In this document: in pieces, positions 23,218 to 34,882 of the stretch | Layout of the letters: every line of letters starts with the position of its first letter | How positions within the stretch are numbered: the first letter of the stretch is position 1 | Origin: Carpediemonas membranifera BICM | Lineage: Eukaryota > Protista > Fornicata | Reading direction: 5' to 3' | Assembly (NCBI GenBank): GCA_019828565.1 | Contig: JAHDYR010000015.1 | Coordinates: 1 to 63,122 of the forward strand | Length of the DNA stretch: 63,122 nucleotides | Notes under the pieces: generated by a model | The model's database searches: none | What the model was told of the DNA's origin: nothing | What the model saw: the letters and a program-made list of their open reading frames with translations, nothing else | Program-made: the position numbers and the translations under genes

Positions 23218-24820
23218 ATAGATGGATAATCGGAGTATGTATATAAAGGGTTCTTTATGTTTACACTATCTTCACCAATCTACAGTCAATTACGTCTATT
23301 GCGAGCGAAGAACAGCTTTCAGTAAGAAATTTGAGGCAACTGTCAGGTAATTCTTAGTAAAGTCGTCGGCAATGGCGTAATAGTCATCAATTTCAGTCAA
23401 GTGACTCAGCTTAACGCGCATTTGCTTGATTTCGGCGATAAACTCGGCCCGCTTCATTCGTTTGTCATAAAGTGCATTCCGGCCATATCACAAGTTTTCT
23501 TCATCACAAGGCACGCACGGGGGTGTAAGCGGGACCGAGGCTACCACCACAGCCTCTTCTGAGCCGATGGATACCTTTTGTTGATTTGCCAGAATTGACC
23601 AAACGACGAGGAATGCTTGATATGCCGCGTATGGATGATTTGAAGAAGAACTGAAGGTGAAAGACAAAGATCATAGAAATACACATCATGCGGCTCACTT
23701 TTTGGAGACATTGGAGGTAAATTAGCTTTTAGGATCGTTTTTCGTTTGCCAGGCAAAGTTTTGAGTGTTTTCTCGAGAATACTCGATGCCGTATGCAATC
23801 TTGCTGCTATTTGATGCAGAACAAAGGTTGTTATGTGACACAGATGTTCTCACTTGCTTTCGGCCTTCTTTGTTGGCGAGCAAAAGCAAACTTCTTTGGG
23901 AGCAATTCCCAAAAATCGCATCTTTACGCACCCAGGAAATTTTATCTCGGCATACTGGACCAGTGGGGGAGGCACGGCAGTCTATCCCGACCCTAGATGA
24001 ACCATGAGACAGTTTTTCGACGAGAGTTTGTGCGATGCCACTGACTTCGCGAGTGAAGGTCTTCAGCATGTTGTACGGATGTCTAAACGATGCCTTGAGC
24101 AAGTGCAAGGCGTAATACGCTGTAGTTTAATTGTTTGAGCGCGTTCATTTTTTCTTGCAATCGTCCTTTTTTCATGTATTCCGGGACTTATTCCGGGACT
24201 TTAAGTCCCGGTTAAAGTACCAGAAAAAACAGCATGAGGGCGCTGCGTCCGAGCTTGCAGTCTCTGGTACACCCCTTGAGGCTCTTCTTGCCATGGGGAC
24301 GTTGTGGGAGGTCCGGAGTCTCCGCGCTTACATCGGACAGGCTATAAGGACAGATGAAACATTTGTTCGTCGCACCTCCGAGCGACTACTTCAATAGCCC
24401 ACGAGGCGAGTGATTCGCCGTGGAAAGACATACAACTACTACAAAATTGCGTTCATCGAAGCAGGCTAGAGCCGCTGATGCCATGATCCGCGAAGTTCTA
24501 ACGACGAAGGACTCGTTCTGAAAGAAAATATAACCGTAACTCCTGAACGAAGCCGTTTTGGGAGCTGTTATTGTTGATTTTGGACCAATTATCTGAGGTA
24601 CTCCAACCGAATTCGTTCCGTCACTTGAGTTTGTGGCCGCACTCCCGATGCCTAATCAGATGATGAAAATAGGTTTCCGAATGCTTCTGGAGTGAGTGAG
24701 CACCTTTGGATTATGATGTGACATGATGAGGAGATGATGGATGAACTGTTTACATAAAGTGCACCGCAGGGTGACTGTGCGGAGTCAAGGGGACACCACA
24801 CTTCCCCTCCAGAGGACGAA

Positions 24821-25300
24821 CTACCGGCGTCCGTGAGGGCGGAAGTTGCGCTTGTAACGGGCGAACAGGGGGCGCAAGGTAGGGTTGTCCTCGAGGTACG
24901 AGTCGAGTGCGGCGAGTTGGTCATAGTAGGCGTTGTACGGGATAAAGGAGTCTTCCGAGTCCTCGAGACCTTGCCAGTGGATAAGCATCTCGAGTTTGCC
25001 GTTACGCTCGCGATGACCGACGATAGAGTCGACAGGCTGCTCGTTCTGCTCGAACCCGACGAGGGTCTCGAGATCCTTGAGCGACGTGTTATGGGCACGT
25101 TTAAACGGCACAAGGCGATCAGCGTGTACGAGCAGCTCAGCCTTCGTGACCAGATCCTGAAGGCGATAGGAATTGGGGCTCTTCCCTTCCCCCAGCATGC
25201 GAACAGGGCCGCGGATCGGGGCGAGAATCTTGGAAGGGCTCTTGGTTGGGTAGCGGACGAGCACGAGTTCCTGATCTTTCCAGGGGAACCCGGGCGCGGT
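24821..25300 (-). pseudogene. Ty3/gypsy integrase C-terminal fragment (GPY/F + chromodomain)
   Basis: VLVRYPTKSPSKILAPIRGP ... VDSIVGHR...LIHWQGLEDSEDSF; homologous to the end of 40646..41872. Confidence 0.8.
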
Positions 25301-25314
25301 GTAAAGAAAGAAAG

Positions 25315-25671
25315 AAAATGCGGGCTTACGATTGTGCCGATGCCTTCTCTGGTCCCGTGCCACTTGGGTGTAGGGGGGTCGTCACCTGTGATTCCCAGTT
25401 GTCTGTTCACGCGATGCTGGCACCTGGTCTCTCTTTTCCGCTTTTCGTTCGTTGTTGCTAGTGTTTCCTCTGTTTCTCTGCCTGCTAAAGCGTACTGGAA
25501 GTCTATGAAGCTGTGGACTCTTGTGTTTGCTGTTCTCCATGTCTCTTGTATACAAACCGCTTCAATGTCTCTGAGTTTGGTTTGAATTGCTGTTGCTATT
25601 GATGCCGTGAAGTCCTTTCCTCGTCCTATGTGCCCCTGAGTGTTCAGGCTTAAGATCTTGAACGTTTCCAT
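25315..25671 (-). pseudogene. N-terminus of a LINE apurinic endonuclease (ORF2), truncated
   Basis: FKILSLNTQG, VCIQETW and EGIGTIV; ends abruptly at the gypsy fragment. Confidence 0.8.
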
Positions 25672-26004
25672 GTTGTACTATGCTCTGATCCTTATCCTGC
25701 GAATTCTGAGAATTTCTGCAGGGGCTAAGGGTTCACTGTGTCACTGTCCCGTCAAGGGGCCTCGATGCCGGTCTTGGTAACCCTTGGCGGGCCAGCCTCC
25801 GTGCTTCTTGGTGACCGATTCGCCCTCGGGCATGGATACTTAGGAGGGGGCGCAGTGGCGTGACCCCCCCTTTGGCTGCCGCCTGCAACCTACTGGCAGT
25901 GCCCGTGGGCTAATGCCAGGCCCTGGGTGGGAGCCAGGGTTATATAAAGAAAGAAAGTCTGATACACTAGTTTCTGAAATAATACTGCTTTATCTCTGAT
26001 CCAC

Positions 26005-28596
26005 TTACTCCTCCGAGACCTCACTTTCACTGGCATCATCATACGGTTCAGGGTCGCGGGCCTGACCACCTTGCATGTTGGCCATGAAGGACATGAACTG
26101 TGTCATCATCTCCATGGGGTCCATCTGTCTGGTGGTCCTGGTTCTCCTGCTCTTGTTCCTGCGACGGGGCACTACCGCGGCGTCTCTGTTCTTGACCATC
26201 TCAATCGGTGGTCTGACAAGGGGGTCGGGTTCAGTGCCTGCCAGGTCTGCGGGTCTCTGCCGGGCGGCCTTGAGGGCTGAGATTTCTCGCTGTGCCTCTG
26301 CCAGTTGAAGTAGGAGCCTCTGTTTCTCGGCGTCCTGCTGGTCCGGTAGTCTGCTTCTTACCGTCCCAGCGGTGTCGTCACTGTGTCTGCTCCTCTTTCC
26401 TGACTCGGATAGGTCGTCTCTGCCTTGGCTGCCTCGCTTGCCGGCTGCTGAGGAGTGGTTGCCTCTGCGGTTGTCTCTGGCTGTTCCAAGATGTTCTCTA
26501 AGCCACTCGTTTCTCTCCCGCTGGCGCCTCTCTGCCTCTTCGAAGTCGGGTCTGATCCGGAGACCGCCCTGTTCTGCTCTGTTGGCCCTGGCTTCCAGAC
26601 GTTCGAGCTCCGTGTCGCGTTCATAGATTTCAGGACGTCTGATTTCTCTGTCGATGAGGCGCCCAGCCTCTCTGTCGTCAGGGTGTCTGATGTCTCTTTC
26701 GGTGGGTTGGTCAGCTTCTCTGGCGATGGGGCGTCTGACCTCATAGTCAGCCGGACGTCTGGCCTCTCTGTCGGCCAGGTGTATGGCTTCTCTGTGGGTG
26801 GGATGTCCGATCTCTCTGCCAGTAGGGCGCCTGACTTCCTGGTCGACCGACCGTCTGGCCTCTCTGTCAACTTGGTGACCCACCTCTCTGTCGTGGTGTC
26901 TCTCATCTCTGATGTCCGGGCGCCTGATCTCTTTGTGGTCACGGCGCTCGTCCTCGCGGCGTCTGTCCACCCGGGTTGCAGGGTCCAGGATGTCTCTGAA
27001 GTTCCTGCCTACCACTTGGTGCTCGACTTCGCCGACTGCCATCTGGAGGTGAGTGTCTCTGTACGTGACCCTGAAGGGCATCTCGTCCTTGCCGTCCACG
27101 TCGGGTTTGTATCCGCTGGGTGGGATGCCCCCCATTCTGACTCTGGCCTCTTCCGGGATCACTGTGGTGACCATGCGTCGGCCTTCCCAGCGCATGCGCT
27201 TCAGGATAGACCCCGCGTCTCTGGTTCTGATCAGTCCCCAGTCTCTGGGGATGAATGCGACTCTGATGGAGGCTCTGGCGTTCGGGGGGGCTTTGACATT
27301 GGCTATGCGCCCTTCAAACTCTCTGAGTGCCTCTGCTAGCTCTTCGCATCCCCAGGTCTCTTGCCGGGCGATGCGCTCTCTGCTGGGCCACCAGTTGACG
27401 AGCTGTGACAGTGTGACCATGTTCTCTTCGTTGTGCGCTCCAAGGCCGGCTCGGCCCTGGACCGCTCTGAGTTGCTCTGGGTTGTCTAGCTCCTCTTCCA
27501 GTGTCCAGATAGGGTTCCTAGTGACTCTGTTGTCTCTGTCAGTGAAGGCGTCAGGGGATAGGAGCAGGCCCTTCATCCCCATCGCTACCTCTGCAAATCC
27601 GAAGCCAATGCCGAACCTGTGTTCTCTGTCTGGCACTACAAGGAACCTGTTGCCCTGGTGCCCGTCTCTGATCTCTCTGAACGCTGGGTGGGGGCCAAAC
27701 TCCTGGAACGCTGTGTGCCTCGGCTGGAACCCCAGCCCTGCTATGATGTCACTGCTTTCTCTGGCTGCTCTGACCTCTTCCTCAATGGCTGGCTGCAGCA
27801 GTCTGAGGGCGTCCTCTAACTCACCGATGCCGTTGGTGCCTCTGAATAGTGCTAGAACTCTGATTGCGAACAGTGTGCTGTCCGCCAGTGCGCAGTGATA
27901 GCACCCCGCCGTGTGGCTGTGGTAGGGGCATACTCTCTTGGGTGCTTCCCGTGATTGCCACCGGCTGGTCCACAGGTCTAGCCACTCCATGCTCTGCGCG
28001 TTGTTGTAATTGACTCTGAATCTCTGTTCGAGGTCGGGTCTAGCCCTGACCAGCAGCGTTGGCAGCTCGTTTTCGTCCACTAGTCTCTGTGCGAAGTAGT
28101 CTCTGCTCTCTGCGGCTAAGCCGTTCGCTGCGTCTGTGAGGAGGAACATCTCCATGTGCTTTCCCTTGGCGAACAGGTGGACTTTGCAGCCTTCTCTTCT
28201 CTCATACGCTTTGAGCTCCGTCGCTAGACGGTCGCCCCACGCCTGGAAGGTGTGGACGTGCTGCTCTAGGTCTCTGGGGGGTCTTCCTGTCGCTATGTCT
28301 ACGAAGGTCGCTGGTGGTAGGCCTGTGACAGCCCATGATGTGTGCCTTGACTGCTCGACTCTGTTGAGCGGCATGTCCTGGTAGAACATACCGTGGCCGT
28401 GGCCGACCACTTCACTGCTATCCACATCTATCATGACAATGCCTCCTTCGACCGGGATCGCTGGTGTGCCTTGTCTTGAGCTGCCCGTGTAGCTGCACTC
28501 AAAGTCAATGGCTGCTAGGACAAGTCTCTGGTTCGGCTGGGTCTCTGATAAGGGCAGGCTGCTGGTCTCGTGCTGGCTCCTCCCTTCGCCTGCCAT
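26005..28596 (-). CDS. MAEL/arenavirus-NP-like DEDDh exonuclease protein with 8-aa charged repeats (probable LINE ORF1)
   Basis: IDFEC, PVEGG, GHG, TGLPP, FAKG...E, CPYH and YHCALAD, in the same motif order as the domain at 13763-14400. Confidence 0.8.
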   Translation of the reverse strand: MAGEGRSQHETSSLPLSETQPNQRLVLAAIDFECSYTGSSRQGTPAIPVEGGIVMIDVDSSEVVGHGHGMFYQDMPLNRVEQSRHTSWAVTGLPPATFVDIATGRPPRDLEQHVHTFQAWGDRLATELKAYERREGCKVHLFAKGKHMEMFLLTDAANGLAAESRDYFAQRLVDENELPTLLVRARPDLEQRFRVNYNNAQSMEWLDLWTSRWQSREAPKRVCPYHSHTAGCYHCALADSTLFAIRVLALFRGTNGIGELEDALRLLQPAIEEEVRAARESSDIIAGLGFQPRHTAFQEFGPHPAFREIRDGHQGNRFLVVPDREHRFGIGFGFAEVAMGMKGLLLSPDAFTDRDNRVTRNPIWTLEEELDNPEQLRAVQGRAGLGAHNEENMVTLSQLVNWWPSRERIARQETWGCEELAEALREFEGRIANVKAPPNARASIRVAFIPRDWGLIRTRDAGSILKRMRWEGRRMVTTVIPEEARVRMGGIPPSGYKPDVDGKDEMPFRVTYRDTHLQMAVGEVEHQVVGRNFRDILDPATRVDRRREDERRDHKEIRRPDIRDERHHDREVGHQVDREARRSVDQEVRRPTGREIGHPTHREAIHLADREARRPADYEVRRPIAREADQPTERDIRHPDDREAGRLIDREIRRPEIYERDTELERLEARANRAEQGGLRIRPDFEEAERRQRERNEWLREHLGTARDNRRGNHSSAAGKRGSQGRDDLSESGKRSRHSDDTAGTVRSRLPDQQDAEKQRLLLQLAEAQREISALKAARQRPADLAGTEPDPLVRPPIEMVKNRDAAVVPRRRNKSRRTRTTRQMDPMEMMTQFMSFMANMQGGQARDPEPYDDASESEVSEE

Positions 28597-29782
28597 CCTT
28601 CTGGCCTCCTGCTGATCTCTGATATGCTCTTGGGACGATGTCTTCCAGGCTAATCCTCGGCGGCACCTCCTTGTCTCTGTTCACACTGTCTATAGGAAGC
28701 TGAGTGCGCTTGCCTGATGCCTCGCCCCCCAGCACCTGCCGCTTGGGGGTTCTTGTGGTTCTCTTGTTGGCACTGACTCTGTTTATCCTCTGAGACGCTG
28801 GGGTTGCCGGGGCTTGGCTACCACAGATACTGTCCGGCCTCGTCATTTCTACGTCGCTGTCGATGTCCGTGCTAGCAGACCTGTCCTCCTGGGAGGCATG
28901 TTCGGCTCTCTTGTCACGGCTGATCTCTGCTCCGATGATTTCGGCTCTGACTACTGCAAACTGCGGCTTGCCACTGAGCGGCGTCTCTTCCCCTCGCTTC
29001 CGGATACCGCTACGGCCGCTGGTGTCTACTCCTGAGCTATTCCATGCCGCTTGCCACACCACTGGTGCCTCTGGTGCCTGCAGTCTCAGGATGTCTCTTG
29101 CCTCTTCCATGTACCTGGTGATGGGCCATGCCTCCGTGTCTTCCAGGTCCAGTAGAACTCTGAAGGTGCCATCCTCTTGCTCTATGGCTACTCTGGTGAT
29201 GGGTCCTCTGTTGGACGGGTCCCACACTTGCTCGCCGCTGAGGCACTCGGGGGCTTCATCCTCTGCTGTCCCTGTGATGACCGAGTACATGCCAGTCTCT
29301 CTGTTTTCGACGCTGTCTCTGACGTTGTCCCACTGAATGGGGTTCTGGCCTCTGGGTTGCAGGACTGCTTGTTCGATGGACTGCTCCTTGGGCCATCTGG
29401 CCATGTCCTTGTGCCCTGGTCTCACTGATGTGGGCTCGTTAGAGCTGGCGATGCGCTGAATCTCTGCTTCTCTGGGGTCTAGGGCCTCTGTGACCATGAT
29501 GAAGAGGTCGCGAAGCCCGTGGATGCCGTTCGGATGTCTGAGGATGGTTTCCCTGTTGTCGGTCACTCCTGAGGCTGTGAGGATCCTTCTGACGTTGGTT
29601 AGTACTTCCTTGCGGGCTGTGGAGCTTGCGCCGAAGGACTTTTCGGAAAAGTCGTCACTTCTGCGCAGTAGTAAGGTCCGGGCGTTTCCTTCCTTGATCA
29701 GGTAGCTGTCTAGTAGTTCTCTGATGGTACTCCACTGTTTTTGCGTAGATTCTCTGGTTTTCTCTGATATTTCTACCTGCAT
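28505..29782 (-). CDS. upstream ORF, probably the N-terminal part of the same ORF1 (frameshift)
   Basis: 425-aa ORF overlapping 26005..28596, with the same AG-rich sense-strand composition. Confidence 0.5.
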   Translation of the reverse strand: MQVEISEKTRESTQKQWSTIRELLDSYLIKEGNARTLLLRRSDDFSEKSFGASSTARKEVLTNVRRILTASGVTDNRETILRHPNGIHGLRDLFIMVTEALDPREAEIQRIASSNEPTSVRPGHKDMARWPKEQSIEQAVLQPRGQNPIQWDNVRDSVENRETGMYSVITGTAEDEAPECLSGEQVWDPSNRGPITRVAIEQEDGTFRVLLDLEDTEAWPITRYMEEARDILRLQAPEAPVVWQAAWNSSGVDTSGRSGIRKRGEETPLSGKPQFAVVRAEIIGAEISRDKRAEHASQEDRSASTDIDSDVEMTRPDSICGSQAPATPASQRINRVSANKRTTRTPKRQVLGGEASGKRTQLPIDSVNRDKEVPPRISLEDIVPRAYQRSAGGQKDGRRREEPARDQQPALIRDPAEPETCPSSH

Positions 29783-30623
29783 TCACTGTGCCGTTTTTGT
29801 GCGTATGAAAAAGGTTGGCGAATGCATCGTCCTGAAAATCGGTCAGCGTGGCCTTGTGCGGCTCCTGTAACTGTGTAGGGGTCTCGGTTTTCTTCTTTTT
29901 CTCTGGTTCGGCCGTAAACTGCGTTACGGCGAAATGGCGCACTGTCCAAAAATGCACGCTGATTTTCTCGCTGGGTGGTCTCTGGATTTTAGGACTGACT
30001 TCGCCCTAGGTAGTGCCTACATGAGGGCTATCTTTGGTCTCTGTGCCTCTGCTTGATCACTCCTCCTTCACCGTGAACATGCCAAAAACCAAAAGTGGTC
30101 GCGGCTTCTCGGTGTTCTCTGTGGGTTTCCCTGCTTTCTCTGTTAAATCTCTGTTCATTGTACTCTTGTATTGTCTCTGTGTTGGGCGTGGAGCTCCCAC
30201 TCGCGCCCGGCGGGGATCCATGAATGCACCTTTGAGTTTGGCGGACAGGAAGCTGAGGCCGCTCCTTCTGAGCTGATGGGGGCGCTGTACCAGTTTACTG
30301 GGACAGGCCGTTGGCCTTTTGTCCGTCCCCGAACATAGTCTTTCGACTTAGCTGAATTCGATGGCGGCCTGACCATGTCCCCCCATACCTGTGGCCAGTC
30401 CCTACAGTTCCCTTAGGTTCACAGTGGCTGGTGCAACCACATATGTGGATTTGTCCCTGCTTGTGGTTAGTCTGGGTTCCTGTACCCTGTTTGCGTTCTC
30501 ATTTGTTGTTCTCTCTGTCGTACTATGGTCTGGTGCTACCGGGATATGAGGGGTTCCCCCTCCGATCCCAGGAGCTCTGGATCCCTGTAGATGTGATTAC
30601 CTGACCTTACCCTGTTGCCCTTC

Positions 30624-30900
30624 CTACTTTACCCTGTAACTGTCGTAGACCTTCCCTAGCTCTCTGAGCCCGGCTCTTAGCCCCTCCCATATATCGTCGG
30701 ATCCCCATACCATGAGTTGTTGGAGCTCTAGTAGTGGCCTTTCCCTGTACCATTCGCCGTGTGGTCCTGATCTGACCTCGAGGTCCCTTGTGCTCCTTAC
30801 GGCCTTCCTCCATATCTCGCTCCAGCCTTCTCCTCTGTCTACCTCTGGACATTCACACTCGTGAGCGGAGTGTCCTCTGCGTCTGCACACCGTGCAGAAC
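30624..30900 (-). pseudogene. Zn-knuckle-containing fragment (CTVCRRRGHSAHECECP)
   Basis: CCHC-type motif. It could be a gag knuckle or a LINE ORF2 C-terminus; the composition matches the LINE-like block 25300-30900. Confidence 0.35.
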
Positions 30901-31321
30901 TTAGAGCTACCGCCGTGAGGTCTCTTGGTGATCGGTCTGGCGTTGAGGTTCTTGGCGGCCTTCATCGCGGCACGCGCGAAGTCCTTCTTGCCTGTCAGAC
31001 CTCGGTCTCGACAAGGTACACTGCAGCCACAGCATCTCCGAAAGTGTCGACTGTTTTCAGGTACTCGAGGCGCTTGTTGATCATCGCCTTAGCGGTGTCG
31101 AATACGTCTCCAACAGACGGTTTCTCTGTACGGCCCTTAATATCCGCCTTAAAATCAGCAAAGAACTGCTTCCAAGCGCGGTACTCCTTGATAACACCAT
31201 CAAGTCTCTTAGGTTCTCTTAGATCTTCTTGCTTCTCCTCCTGCTCCGCCATTCTGGCGGTTAAAGCTTTAATAAGCTTGTCCTGCTTGTCAATCTTCGC
31301 AATAAGCTCCTCGTTGGCCAT
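30900..31321 (-). pseudogene. gag remnant of a YR retrotransposon
   Basis: LREPKRLDGVIKEY...NKRLEYLKTVD...AAVYL aligns with the gag ORFs at 47194-47733 and 55508-56027. Confidence 0.7.
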
Positions 31322-32158: not shown

Positions 32159-33025
32159 TTATCTCTTCTTATCCTTCTCTAATAAGGCTCTGAACGGGGC
32201 TACGGACGTGCTGTAGTCCAGGCGAAGCACGTCTTCCACATAACGGATCAATGAGTTCTGGTCAGCCCATGTGCCCTTCGCCGCAACAACCGGGATAGGG
32301 ATACCCATCAGAACCAGGTCAGCCGCGCTCCCGCGGCGCAGACCGTGCAGCCGAGCCTGCGTGGAGATGATGCCCTTCACCTGGTCCTCAATGACTGAGT
32401 AGGGGTGCGACCAGAGAGGGTCTTCGGCCACCGCGCCTGCATCTATCCTATTGACTAGGACCTCAGATAGCCAGTGAGCCGGGTCTAGCTCCCCGTCGAC
32501 TCTCGGGACGAGCTTCTCAACGACCACTCGCCGGGTCTTAGTGCCGTGGATGGCGATTCTTAGCCCGCGGCGCGCGCTCTCCGCTCTAACGTCACCAACA
32601 TGCAGGGCATAGATCTCTCCTGGCCTGGAGGTCGTGGCGTAGGTGGTCAGTGCAAAGGCGAAAGCCTCCTTCCAAAGGTCGTCGTCTCGAGACTGAGGGT
32701 GGGCAGCCCGAAGCCTGTCAACCAGAGTGTGCGCGCGAATCGGGAGAGCAGGCCCTCTAAGCTTCCCAAGAGCGTTCCTTGCCTGCTCTTTGATGACTGC
32801 GTCGGCGTCCAGCGGTGGTTCCCATGATGACACCCGGCCGAAGAAGCGACGGATTAGGCTCCACTTCGAGGTGATTGTATCCTTGGTGACCCTCGAGGCT
32901 TGGTCCTTGGCCCATGCTCTTATGACTTCGATGCTGCTAGTGTCAGGTGGAAGGGCACCCCAGAAACCCGAGAACTGTTGGAGCACACCCGCGACGTGGC
33001 GCTTGTCTACGAATCCACTTAACAT
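32159..33025 (-). CDS. tyrosine recombinase (element A)
   Basis: SRPGEI, TKT, HGLRRG, GTW, RY. Confidence 0.92.
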   Translation of the reverse strand: MLSGFVDKRHVAGVLQQFSGFWGALPPDTSSIEVIRAWAKDQASRVTKDTITSKWSLIRRFFGRVSSWEPPLDADAVIKEQARNALGKLRGPALPIRAHTLVDRLRAAHPQSRDDDLWKEAFAFALTTYATTSRPGEIYALHVGDVRAESARRGLRIAIHGTKTRRVVVEKLVPRVDGELDPAHWLSEVLVNRIDAGAVAEDPLWSHPYSVIEDQVKGIISTQARLHGLRRGSAADLVLMGIPIPVVAAKGTWADQNSLIRYVEDVLRLDYSTSVAPFRALLEKDKKR

Positions 33026-33053
33026 GTCACCCTCGAGGGAGATGGTGAAGATG

Positions 33054-34882
33054 TCACTCCCACAAACAGGGCCGCCAATCGGTATGTGCCGTCCGCCTGC
33101 AGGGGGTGATCGCTGATAGGTCCGCGTCCTCCGCTTTGACTCTGAAGAACATGCGGTGCGGAGTCAGCTCTCTCAGCGCAACTGCCGTCGGCGATCTGCA
33201 GTCGGACACTAGCAGGACGAGGGCACTTGGTAGGGATCTCGGCTGTGTGGTCCTTGCAATGTGGAGGTGGCACAGCTTTGCATATACTGCTGATAGGAGC
33301 GCGAAGGGTGTCACTGCTAGCCACCTTCCTGTCGACCAGTCCATGTCTATGAACCTGCTGTCGTCGACCGTCGACGGGCTGCGTTCTACTCGAGCTCCAA
33401 GCCACTCGGAGGGCCAGATCTCTTTCTGCATGGGACCCCCACTCGGCTGTGATCCTGTCGATGATCCGACGAGGCGCTGAGAGCGTTTCGGACCTCGACA
33501 ATGCGTCGGCTTGGACGTTCAAGTGACCAGAGACGTGAAGGAGCCTTATCCTGATGGCCCTTTCGCTCAGTGTGGGTAGCAGGTCCCGTATGACTGAGTC
33601 TACAAACTGCGGAGCCTTGGTTGAGCCTTGCTTGTTCCACCAGCTGACTGCTGCCACCGAGTCGGAGTAGATGGTGACCTCCGCGTCTGTCAACGGCTCT
33701 GCTAGGATCAGTCTCACTGCTTGTTCCACTGCTCGGAACTCGAGCAATGTGATGTGCTCGTCCATCGGGGCCGGCCTGGTGAAGGTGAAGGGTTGACGGC
33801 CCGGGATTGTGATCACTCCGCCGAGTCCTGAGTGAGAGGCGTCTGTCATCGCTGTGATGTGGAGCGTCGGAGACAGACCCCACAGGTGAAGCAGCTCTTG
33901 GAAGGACCTTATCGGAGATGGCCGTGATAAGCGGCGCTCCCATTGGATCAGTGCTTCTCTCGCTTCGCCGGATATGAGTGTGCGGTAGCGGTCCTTCAGT
34001 TGGGCTCTCTGGAGGGGTCTGATAGCGGCTCGGCCCTCCGGCCAAATGATGGCTGCAAAGCCGAGATTGCCCAACAACCGCTGCATGCTGTGTGTCGTGG
34101 CCCCCGATGCCAAGGCCTCCCTGACTCGTGAGAGGTACTTCTGCCGCTTGCTGTCCTGCAGAGCGATCCCCCGCCGGCCAGAGTCCATGACGAAGCCAAG
34201 GAAGTCGGTCTGCTGCGTGGGTGAGAGCTGCGATTTCTTCCCTGTTGATGACCAGGCCGAGGTTCTCTAGGAGCTGTAGTATGCCGGGCATCGCAGCGGT
34301 CAGTGTCTTCTTGTCCCCGGACAGGAGCCAGTCGTCGAGATAGATGGTCAAGTTGATGCCTGGGAACATCCGTGCTACGATCTGCGCTGCTGTCAGCATC
34401 ACCCTTTGGAAGAAGAATGGCGCTGGGCCCCAGCCGAAGGGTAGGACGTTGAAGGCATAGGGTCTCCCGTCGACCACGAAACCCAGCAGCGGGCTGTCCG
34501 AGGCCCTGACCCCTAACTGGTAGTAGCCCTTGACTAGGTCCAAGCGTGCCATGTAGTCTCCTTCGCGAAGCTGGGCCATCGCTTGCTTGACTCCCTTCAG
34601 CCGAAAGGTTCGATGTTCCGTTGACACTGCGTTCAATGCCCTTAGGTCGTGGATCAGACGCGTCTCTGGTGGCGTCTTCGGCACAGTGAAGATAGGTGAG
34701 ATCAAGCTGGGAGACCGGCATGGGCTTGCCGCGCCCAGGCTCAGGAGGGTTTTCAGGTGGTCGCGGAATGCCTTGCGGTCCTTGGCGCGAGTTGGTGGTA
34801 GGCGCGGATGACGAGGGTGCGCTCTTAGGGATATCGGGACGCCCTCGCGTAGCCACGTAACCACCTCTGATGGCGCGCCCAA
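33054..34882 (-). CDS. RT-RNaseH-MT-like (element A), frameshifted
   Basis: Motifs are spread over ORFs 33386..34882, 33019..34188 and 33054..33431. Confidence 0.88.

Follow-up and report, generated by a model that had tools for sequence, protein, structure and literature searches.

A MAEL-type DEDDh exonuclease domain in ORF1 of an APE-type LINE of Carpediemonas membranifera

Organization of the locus

The window analysed here is a 63,122-nucleotide stretch of Carpediemonas membranifera BICM DNA (assembly GCA_019828565.1, contig JAHDYR010000015.1). It contains a copy of a long interspersed nuclear element (LINE) whose first open reading frame (ORF1) carries a nuclease domain of the Maelstrom (MAEL) type, followed on the same strand by the start of an APE endonuclease. 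All features of this finding lie on the minus strand, where the LINE copy spans 30371..25318; these 5.05 kb are the 5′ part of an element with a full length of roughly 9.5 kb. Three consecutive ORFs are found there, of 425 aa (29782..28505), 863 aa (28596..26005) and 339 aa (25671..24652) (Table 1). An earlier note had picked out the 863-aa ORF as a separate MAEL-like ORF with an ordered set of motifs, some 330 bp upstream of an APE ORF. The 863-aa ORF and its motifs are present on the minus strand in the order described, and the APE sits on an ORF of its own, but the 863-aa ORF is not free-standing: it is the back part of an ORF1 of ~1,260 aa and is in frame with 29782..28505 in sibling copies.

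We searched the C. membranifera assembly (24.2 Mb, 69 contigs) and labelled the genomic copies nearest to the window LINE copy family A. Copies on C56, C23, C7, C6, C14 and C67 align to 30371..25318 at 99.2–99.6% identity, and the family-A copies are 99.4–99.9% identical to one another. The homology starts at the same base in the window copy and in the copies on C56, C6 and C14, and the flanks upstream are unrelated; 30371 is therefore the 5′ end of the element. The 3′ stop points differ among copies, and parts of the 3′ region are held by those on C14, C7, C54 and C67 only. The high pairwise identity and the common 5′ end suggest that family A is young or recently active.

The 425-aa and 863-aa ORFs form a single frame in five of the six family-A copies compared, the window copy among the six. 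In the window copy, and in no other of the six, a C run near 28634 is longer by one C, which splits ORF1. Near 27290, the window copy and the C14 copy have one C more than the other four, and near 25378, within the APE, only the window copy has one C more. All three frame-changing differences among the six copies are single-C length changes in C runs, which may be true mutations or long-read homopolymer errors. In the sister family B, ORF1 is unbroken (open frames of 1,172 aa, on C4 and on C27), and the ORF1s of families A and B are homologous over their whole length (46% identity, 837 aa). In deeper lineages, BLASTP aligns only the nuclease domain within ORF1.

Pfam gave no match for ORF1 when all local ORFs were scanned, the ESM Atlas returned no usable match for its N-terminal and middle regions, and neither the N-terminal 400 aa nor the region after the domain yielded a Pfam, Atlas or other lead. 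Towards the C-terminus, ORF1 also has a basic stretch and an acidic tail. The short coiled coil predicted there has a far longer counterpart at the same position in the ORF1 of an element from a second assembly (L039, see below).

Table 1. Features of the LINE copy in the window
Feature	Position	Strand	Basis
5′ end and 5′ untranslated region (UTR) of the family-A LINE copy	29783..30371	(-)	common homology start in C56, C6 and C14
N-terminal part of ORF1 (425-aa ORF), no known domain	28505..29782	(-)	joined to the 863-aa ORF as a single frame in five sibling copies
Rest of ORF1 (863 aa): MAEL-type domain, conserved middle region, R/E-rich repeats, short coiled coil, acidic tail	26005..28596	(-)	
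MAEL-type DEDDh exonuclease domain, ORF residues ~24–252	27841..28527	(-)	alignments, profile search, hhalign, structure models
Tandem repeat of 96 bp, 2.1 copies, 75% matches, R/E-rich 32-residue units	26666..26868	(-)	Tandem Repeats Finder; self-matches
Predicted short coiled coil towards the C-terminal end of ORF1 (QQDAEKQRLLLQLAEAQREISALKAARQ)	26251..26340	(-)	read from sequence
Spacer between ORF1 and ORF2, 333 nt	25672..26004	(-)	ORF positions
Start of ORF2 (118 aa), covering the N-terminal portion of the APE endonuclease	25318..25671	(-)	matches positions 1–104 of the sibling-ORF2 APE profile
(TTTC)3TTT, directly after the truncation point	25303..25317	(-)	resembles the normal tail of these LINEs

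The ORF1 domain is of the MAEL type

The motifs of the 863-aa ORF run in the order IDFEC (D31, E33), IPVEGG (E50), GHGHG, TGLPP, FAKGKHME (E149) and CPYH...HCALAD (C223, H226, H234, C235 and D239). The spacer between CPYH and HCALAD, which the earlier note had counted as six residues, is seven, giving C-x2-H-x8-C. D31-x-E33 corresponds to Exo I and H234-x4-D239 to Exo III, while E149, four residues after AKG and where, in the model, a helix begins after strand 141–146, occupies the position of the Exo II Asp. D31, E33, E149, H234 and D239 thus make up the putative catalytic set, and E50, followed by the C-x2-H-x8-C of C223, H226 and C235, a predicted zinc site of the ECHC kind. The Exo I D-x-E, the Exo II acid and the Exo III H-x4-D of a DEDDh nuclease are all present and invariant or nearly so.

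This conservation was seen in two alignments. Alignment A1 comprises 11 transposable-element (TE) domains from diverged subfamilies, 23–48% identical to the window copy, in which D-x-E, P-x-E-G, H-G, G-x-P-P, A-K-G-x3-E, C-P-Y-H and H-C-x-L-x-D are invariant or near-invariant. In a joint alignment of 19 TE and cellular sequences (ORF numbering plus three), D34, E36, E53, G95, E152 and D242 are invariant, and A146, H229, H237, C238 and L240 nearly so. With respect to the zinc motif in these 19 sequences (ORF numbering), E50 is invariant, H226 and C235 are conserved in at least 90%, and C223 is lacking from only two of them.

To place the domain among known proteins, we searched 1.84 billion representative proteins with the A1 profile and obtained 20 at E <= 1e-3. 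Fourteen matches were strong, including P0007 from C. membranifera and four from the assembly GCA_002919055.1, the five for which the origin was looked up. The six weaker matches had E-values from 4e-5 to 8e-4; five of them pass the Pfam Maelstrom (PF13017) cut-off, including proteins of Mastigamoeba balamuthi and Rhizamoeba saxonica, and the sixth, P0017, comes from GCA_002919055.1 and has no Pfam match. Using hhalign, A1 was matched to five cellular MAELs with 99.4% probability (E 1.3e-21, 191 columns) and with every motif aligned. In the reverse direction, a scan of the genome with a cellular-MAEL profile matched TE copies only, at E-values down to 1e-11 (3.6e-10 for the first-LINE family, that of the element at 13124..16723, and 2e-7 for family B). 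A cellular, non-TE MAEL gene, sought in the genome with a protist-MAEL profile, was not found. A word-index protein search had as its sole match a 99%-identical hypothetical protein of C. membranifera, and the same type of search with the cellular MAEL alignment returned no animal MAELs, so that the trees below are without animal sequences.

A first structure model, from A1, has a DEDDh/DnaQ fold at a predicted local distance difference test score (pLDDT) of 72, with 3′hExo, ERI2, RNase T and Pol III epsilon at Z ~10. The second model, from the 19-sequence alignment, reached a pLDDT of 83.8 and a predicted template modelling score of 0.82. An exhaustive search with it ranked MAEL highest (9NHC chain F, Z 13.3, 204 residues aligned; 5AF0, Z 12.9, 211 residues; 4YBG, Z 12.6, 212 residues), followed by 3′hExo (Z 12.4, 180 residues) and the arenavirus nucleoproteins (NP) of Lassa virus (Z 10.1, 155 residues) and lymphocytic choriomeningitis virus (LCMV; Z 9.8, 158 residues).

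Several of the results weigh against a MAEL assignment. The Pfam Maelstrom model has no match on the ORF (E up to 1) or anywhere in a six-frame scan of the genome, and a PDB sequence-profile search with the domain found no solved structure. The Exo II acid is Glu and not Asp, a conservative change that is common to cellular protist MAELs. The cellular-MAEL profile finds family A at E 0.03 and by the C-terminal motif only; this weak score means that family A is more divergent, as the earlier note had it. In the structural comparison, the lead of MAEL over 3′hExo is below one Z unit and amounts to a tie, with MAEL covering more of the domain, and the second model was built on an alignment that includes cellular MAELs and may be biased towards them. 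The rival reading is a generic DEDDh exonuclease, for instance one captured from an ERI-1/3′hExo, TREX or RNase T-like host gene, in which the Cys/His pattern arose by convergence. In its favour are the missing Pfam Maelstrom score, the Foldseek ranking, which has TREX1, 3′hExo and REXO2 at the top, and the first model, in which 3′hExo (Z 10.5) scores above MAEL (Z 9.2). However, the protein library is rich in DEDDh exonucleases, yet the six matches outside these TEs were the five Pfam-MAEL proteins and the one without a Pfam match, and another DEDDh family was not among them. Furthermore, PxE-G, AKG-x3-E and CP[YF]H-x7-HCAL-D align column by column with MAELs, as the hhalign result also shows, and the longest structural alignments are those with MAEL. 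A generic origin is therefore very improbable, and from the profile search, the Pfam scan of its matches, hhalign and the structure ranking we hold that the ORF1 domain is MAEL-type.

The domain is linked to an APE–RT ORF

The APE ORF starts at 25671, 333 nt past the ORF1 stop, and opens with METFKILSLNTQGH...CIQETW. The earlier note placed it about 330 bp downstream with the motifs SLNTQG, CIQETW and GIG, all of which are there, but only 25671..25318 is APE and the rest of the ORF is (TTTC)n and Ty3/gypsy sequence. The window copy stops 354 nt into the APE, at 25318, where its alignments to all sibling copies end and the siblings extend further. The C23 copy continues for 1.77 kb, through the rest of the APE into the reverse transcriptase (RT; RVT_1, E 2.5e-28), with a break at the YxDD box; the C7 and C14 copies run through the RT to the ORF2 C-terminus with its CCHC knuckle; and the C56 copy also runs from the same ORF1 through the APE into RVT_1. 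In the sibling ORF2s, the APE matches Exo_endo_phos_2 at E 6.8e-5, below the Pfam cut-off, and the RT matches RVT_1 at E 2.5e-28. As the sibling copies carry ORF1 and an APE–RT ORF2 together, the doubt that the earlier note attached to the linkage, owing to the lost RT of the window copy, is removed. A nested insertion with the remaining APE–RT displaced to another part of the window was also considered and rejected, since it is not present there.

The same arrangement was found outside family A. With ORF residues 1–259 as query, the MAEL-type domain has more than 150 matching places in the 24-Mb genome, which group at ~100, 51, 47, 33 and 23% identity. We sampled 26 loci solely for holding the domain and mapped MAEL, APE and RT in them with profiles. 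The APE follows MAEL on the same strand in 24 of the 26, usually 2.4–3.0 kb and up to 4.6 kb downstream, and the RT follows the APE wherever the sampled locus is long enough; the two exceptions to the MAEL–APE order are the rearranged C67 copy and L024. Pfam confirmed APE and RVT_1 in four subfamilies. The order MAEL, APE, RT spans at least five subfamilies and, in addition, the second assembly, GCA_002919055.1, which is probably Carpediemonas frisia. On one contig of it (L039 1244-9015; also L038), both ORFs are intact: ORF1 has 1,250 aa and contains the domain together with a long coiled coil, and ORF2, which follows it, encodes APE and RT in 1,177 aa. A chromodomain ORF adjoins this element. 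The MAEL-type domains of GCA_002919055.1 have no close match among those of C. membranifera, and a search with its ORF2 allowed no LINE clade to be assigned.

Two layouts of the domain exist, as the earlier note had proposed. In family A and its relatives, ORF1 ends in a stop and a spacer of 330–490 nt separates it from ORF2. In the first LINE, to which the window copy has the low similarity noted before (BLASTP E 2e-6, 23% identity over 237 columns), a 693-aa stretch from MAEL to APE is unbroken in at least 11 near-identical copies, with fused open frames of up to 1,748 aa; the annotated protein J8273_6114 has the same fused arrangement.

A host gene that merely adjoins a LINE fragment, making the architecture a local accident, might be suspected from the window alone, where the RT is absent and the copy lies among unrelated fragments. 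Seven near-identical copies with the same 5′ end, ORF1, spacer and APE, and the same order in at least five subfamilies and another assembly, argue against this, and the more than 150 genomic matches, the sibling copies and the profile-mapped loci refute it; its probability is practically nil. Neither of the outcomes that the earlier note named as refuting its claim was observed: the MAEL ORF is multi-copy rather than a single-copy host gene, and the family-A APE always comes after the MAEL ORF in the sampled loci. Of the unit that it proposed to confirm (MAEL ORF, APE–RT and target-site duplication), the MAEL ORF and APE–RT occur together in the siblings; the window copy has no duplication.

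Common descent and selection on the domain

For 13 elements, trees were built of the MAEL domain and of the RT. Both yield the major groups {A, B/C, D/I/H, E} and {F, K, J, L}, and both set the first LINE and the GCA_002919055.1 element far apart from the others. When family A is compared with a relative at 88% identity, the ratio of nonsynonymous to synonymous divergence (dN/dS) is 0.38 (dN 0.086, dS 0.228). Between subfamilies dS is saturated, and for the same pairs dN is 0.41–0.47 in MAEL and 0.14–0.17 in the RT. These values show that the domain is under purifying selection and evolves about three times faster than the RT. The congruent trees, the conserved residues and the dN/dS of ~0.38 support the view that the association of MAEL and LINE is old and selected, as the earlier note had suggested.

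When cellular MAELs are added to the tree, which is unrooted, they form one clade with 100% support, and of the TE branches the first LINE lies closest to it. With a root within the LINE clade, the LINE sequences would surround the cellular MAELs as a paraphyletic group. Cellular Maelstrom, in animals a factor of the piRNA pathway, could then descend from a domesticated LINE ORF1 nuclease, and MAEL would be an old replication component or anti-silencing weapon of the retrotransposon; we regard such an origin as quite improbable.

A possible role in LINE replication

Taken as a whole, the data make it probable that the window holds a copy of a recently active two-ORF LINE of the APE type, whose ORF1 contains a MAEL exonuclease that was acquired a single time and is likely active in the ribonucleoprotein (RNP) of the element. 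ORF1 would be the gag-like protein, built around a 230-aa 3′–5′ exonuclease from the MAEL branch of the DEDDh superfamily, and ORF2 would provide the APE, the RT and the CCHC knuckle. The domain would have been acquired once, before the LINE lineages split, and since then have passed down together with the RT, as part of ORF1 or as an in-frame fusion with APE–RT. It may act as a Mg/Mn-dependent 3′–5′ exoribonuclease in its own RNP at target-primed reverse transcription. Tentatively, we suggest that the domain trails the RT and removes the copied RNA, or that it trims the 3′ ends of RNA or primer, standing in for an RNase H; we offer this as a possibility, with some reservation. RT and exonuclease would travel in the same 3′-to-5′ direction on the template. 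We favour a role at reverse transcription because of the APE–RT fusion in one old lineage, the ORF2s, in which no RNase H was found, and the small number of PF00075 matches in the genome (three).

Some considerations temper this explanation. Many LINEs are without an RNase H of their own, and the absence proves nothing. ORF1 is uninterrupted in none of the six family-A copies as assembled. No target-site duplication was found for the window copy, which sits in a mosaic of unrelated fragments, or for that mosaic.

The domain might also be a MAEL relative that acts against silencing, by analogy with arenavirus NP, and degrades double-stranded RNA or small-RNA precursors directed against the element. 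The genome has two Piwi-domain (Argonaute-type) genes (G000, C7:87108-88037 and C65:23790-24737), and Lassa and LCMV NP, at Z 10.1 and 9.8, have the highest sequence identity in the structure list (18–20%). Nucleases of the ERI-1 type, which act on small interfering RNA, are among the top structural matches, and the H-C-x3-D arrangement is common to the domain and arenavirus NP. The in-frame APE–RT fusion in one old lineage, on the other hand, gives one domain copy per RT at the site of integration, which fits replication better than a diffusible suppressor. We consider an anti-silencing role doubtful, though not far-fetched.

It is also conceivable that the domain is catalytically silent and serves only or mainly as an RNA-binding module of the ORF1 protein. 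LINE ORF1 proteins are usually RNA chaperones, and the rate at which the domain evolves is, as noted above, about three times that of the RT. Animal MAEL, moreover, binds single-stranded RNA without cutting it (PMC4408791). However, the catalytic positions are invariant or nearly so across subfamilies of 22–50% identity and in cellular protist MAELs, whereas the animal proteins, unlike the TE domains, have lost theirs. A purely or mainly RNA-binding domain is thus unlikely, and an active exonuclease remains the reading that we prefer.

Genomic surroundings of the LINE copies

Directly after 25318, the window has (TTTC)3TTT and then, in another frame, the C-terminal part of a Ty3/gypsy integrase with a chromodomain. 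This Ty3/gypsy fragment lies at 24821-25302 on the minus strand (Pfam Chromo, E 6e-5), and the APE ORF reads through into it. Sister LINE families end in ...CACCATAAA(TTTC)n; with what looks like such a tail directly after 25318, the window copy looks 3′-truncated yet tailed. Upstream, at 30965..30372 on the minus strand, lie the ORF2 C-terminus (CCHC knuckle) and the 3′ UTR of a related LINE, the latter joined without a tail to the exact family-A 5′ end. An exact 5′ end abutting the 3′ end of another RNA, together with an internal tail, is the pattern that template jumps of the RT would be expected to leave.

A (TTTC)n tail together with a target-site duplication was demonstrated for one sister-family insertion, located in the C14 copy (L020 5798-6797): the 5′-truncated 3′ end of a sister LINE, 1 kb in length, is inserted there within the MAEL domain, with a (TTTC)5 tail and an 11-bp duplication, GCACTGGCGGA. 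A hairpin, CUGGGAUC...GAUAUCCCGG, at window positions 30540-30575 reappears in 3′ UTRs of related LINEs, with two occurrences in the C14 copy, and could be a recognition element for the RT; a globally stable fold of the 3′ UTR in the upstream LINE fragment was rejected (z = -0.85). Beyond the ORF2 stop of the C14 copy, at a distance of a few hundred bases, are genes for tRNA-Met and tRNA-Leu (L017 6560-6755). Targeting of tRNA genes was rejected, as tRNAs stand beside one copy only. The window also has a DIRS-like element at 32159-34882 on the minus strand (tyrosine recombinase 32159-33025, RNase H 33019-34188, RT 33386-34882), and a piece similar to it occurs downstream of the C14 LINE copy.

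Comparison with known systems

The ORF1 proteins known from LINEs act as RNA chaperones or as esterases. In the literature on Maelstrom, MAEL-like domains, exonuclease ORF1s of non-LTR (long terminal repeat) elements and Carpediemonas transposons, we found no account of a MAEL domain in a retrotransposon, nor of a LINE whose ORF1 is an exonuclease of the MAEL or any other kind. If an ORF1 works as an exonuclease with its complete active site, the life cycle of LINEs would gain an enzymatic step that is new to them. Zinc-bearing domains of the MAEL type are rare and have so far been tied to host defence, in animal Maelstrom, and to viral immune evasion, in arenavirus NP. Purifying selection on such a domain inside a transposon raises the question of what benefit a 3′–5′ exoribonuclease brings, be it as an RNase H substitute, in 3′-end processing or against silencing. 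These LINEs are a natural system in which to study a catalytically active Maelstrom ancestor, and the fused and unfused layouts offer a ready comparison.

The protist MAELs (PF13017; Entamoeba histolytica EHI_192630) share with the LINE domain the DEDDh-type fold, the catalytic and E/C/H/C zinc sets, and the motifs PxE-G, AKG-x3-E and C-x2-H-x8-C/HCAL-D. They differ in that they are cellular, measure 280–520 aa, have an RRM in some cases and pass the Pfam threshold, whereas the LINE domain falls below it and lies within a 1,260-aa ORF1 or is fused to APE–RT, at more than 150 places. The MAEL protein of Entamoeba, which has retained both motif sets, shows Mg/Mn-dependent exoribonuclease activity, while animal MAELs have lost the catalytic acids and only bind RNA; the zinc site of Drosophila MAEL includes E131 and H291 (PMC4408791). 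Animal Maelstrom (4YBG, 5AF0, 9NHC chain F) has the highest Z values in the structure search, in effect level with 3′hExo, and has the same zinc-site spacing as the LINE domain, but it carries an HMG box and defends the host against transposons, whereas the LINE domain has the complete catalytic set and is encoded by one. The Cys ligands of the Drosophila site are C288 and C300, and its E...C-x2-H-x8-C pattern recurs in E50, C223, H226 and C235.

The exonuclease of arenavirus NP (Lassa 3R3L, LCMV 4O6H) is likewise of the DEDDh type, has a zinc-site Cys after the catalytic His and belongs to a selfish RNA-based replicon. In Lassa NP the arrangement is H528, C529 and D533, with the last zinc Cys directly after the catalytic His. 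Differences are that it is part of a viral nucleoprotein and has a longer spacing between the zinc-site His and the last Cys. Neither the PDB sequence-profile search nor the whole-library profile search returned an arenavirus protein, and the likeness is structural only (Z ~10).

Among retroelements, bdelloid rotifer LTR retrotransposons and Athena/Terminon elements carry a DEDDy (RNase D-like) exonuclease as ORF3 (PMC5408684). This is also a 3′–5′ exonuclease of the same superfamily, held as an accessory gene of retroelements and common to several of their lineages; it differs in its DEDDy branch, its LTR and Penelope-like hosts and its place after pol, in contrast to a LINE ORF1 before APE–RT. 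Finally, the esterase ORF1 of CR1/L2/RTEX elements combines an enzyme domain with a coiled coil in the same gag-like position upstream of APE–RT, but the enzyme there is an SGNH esterase, not an exonuclease.

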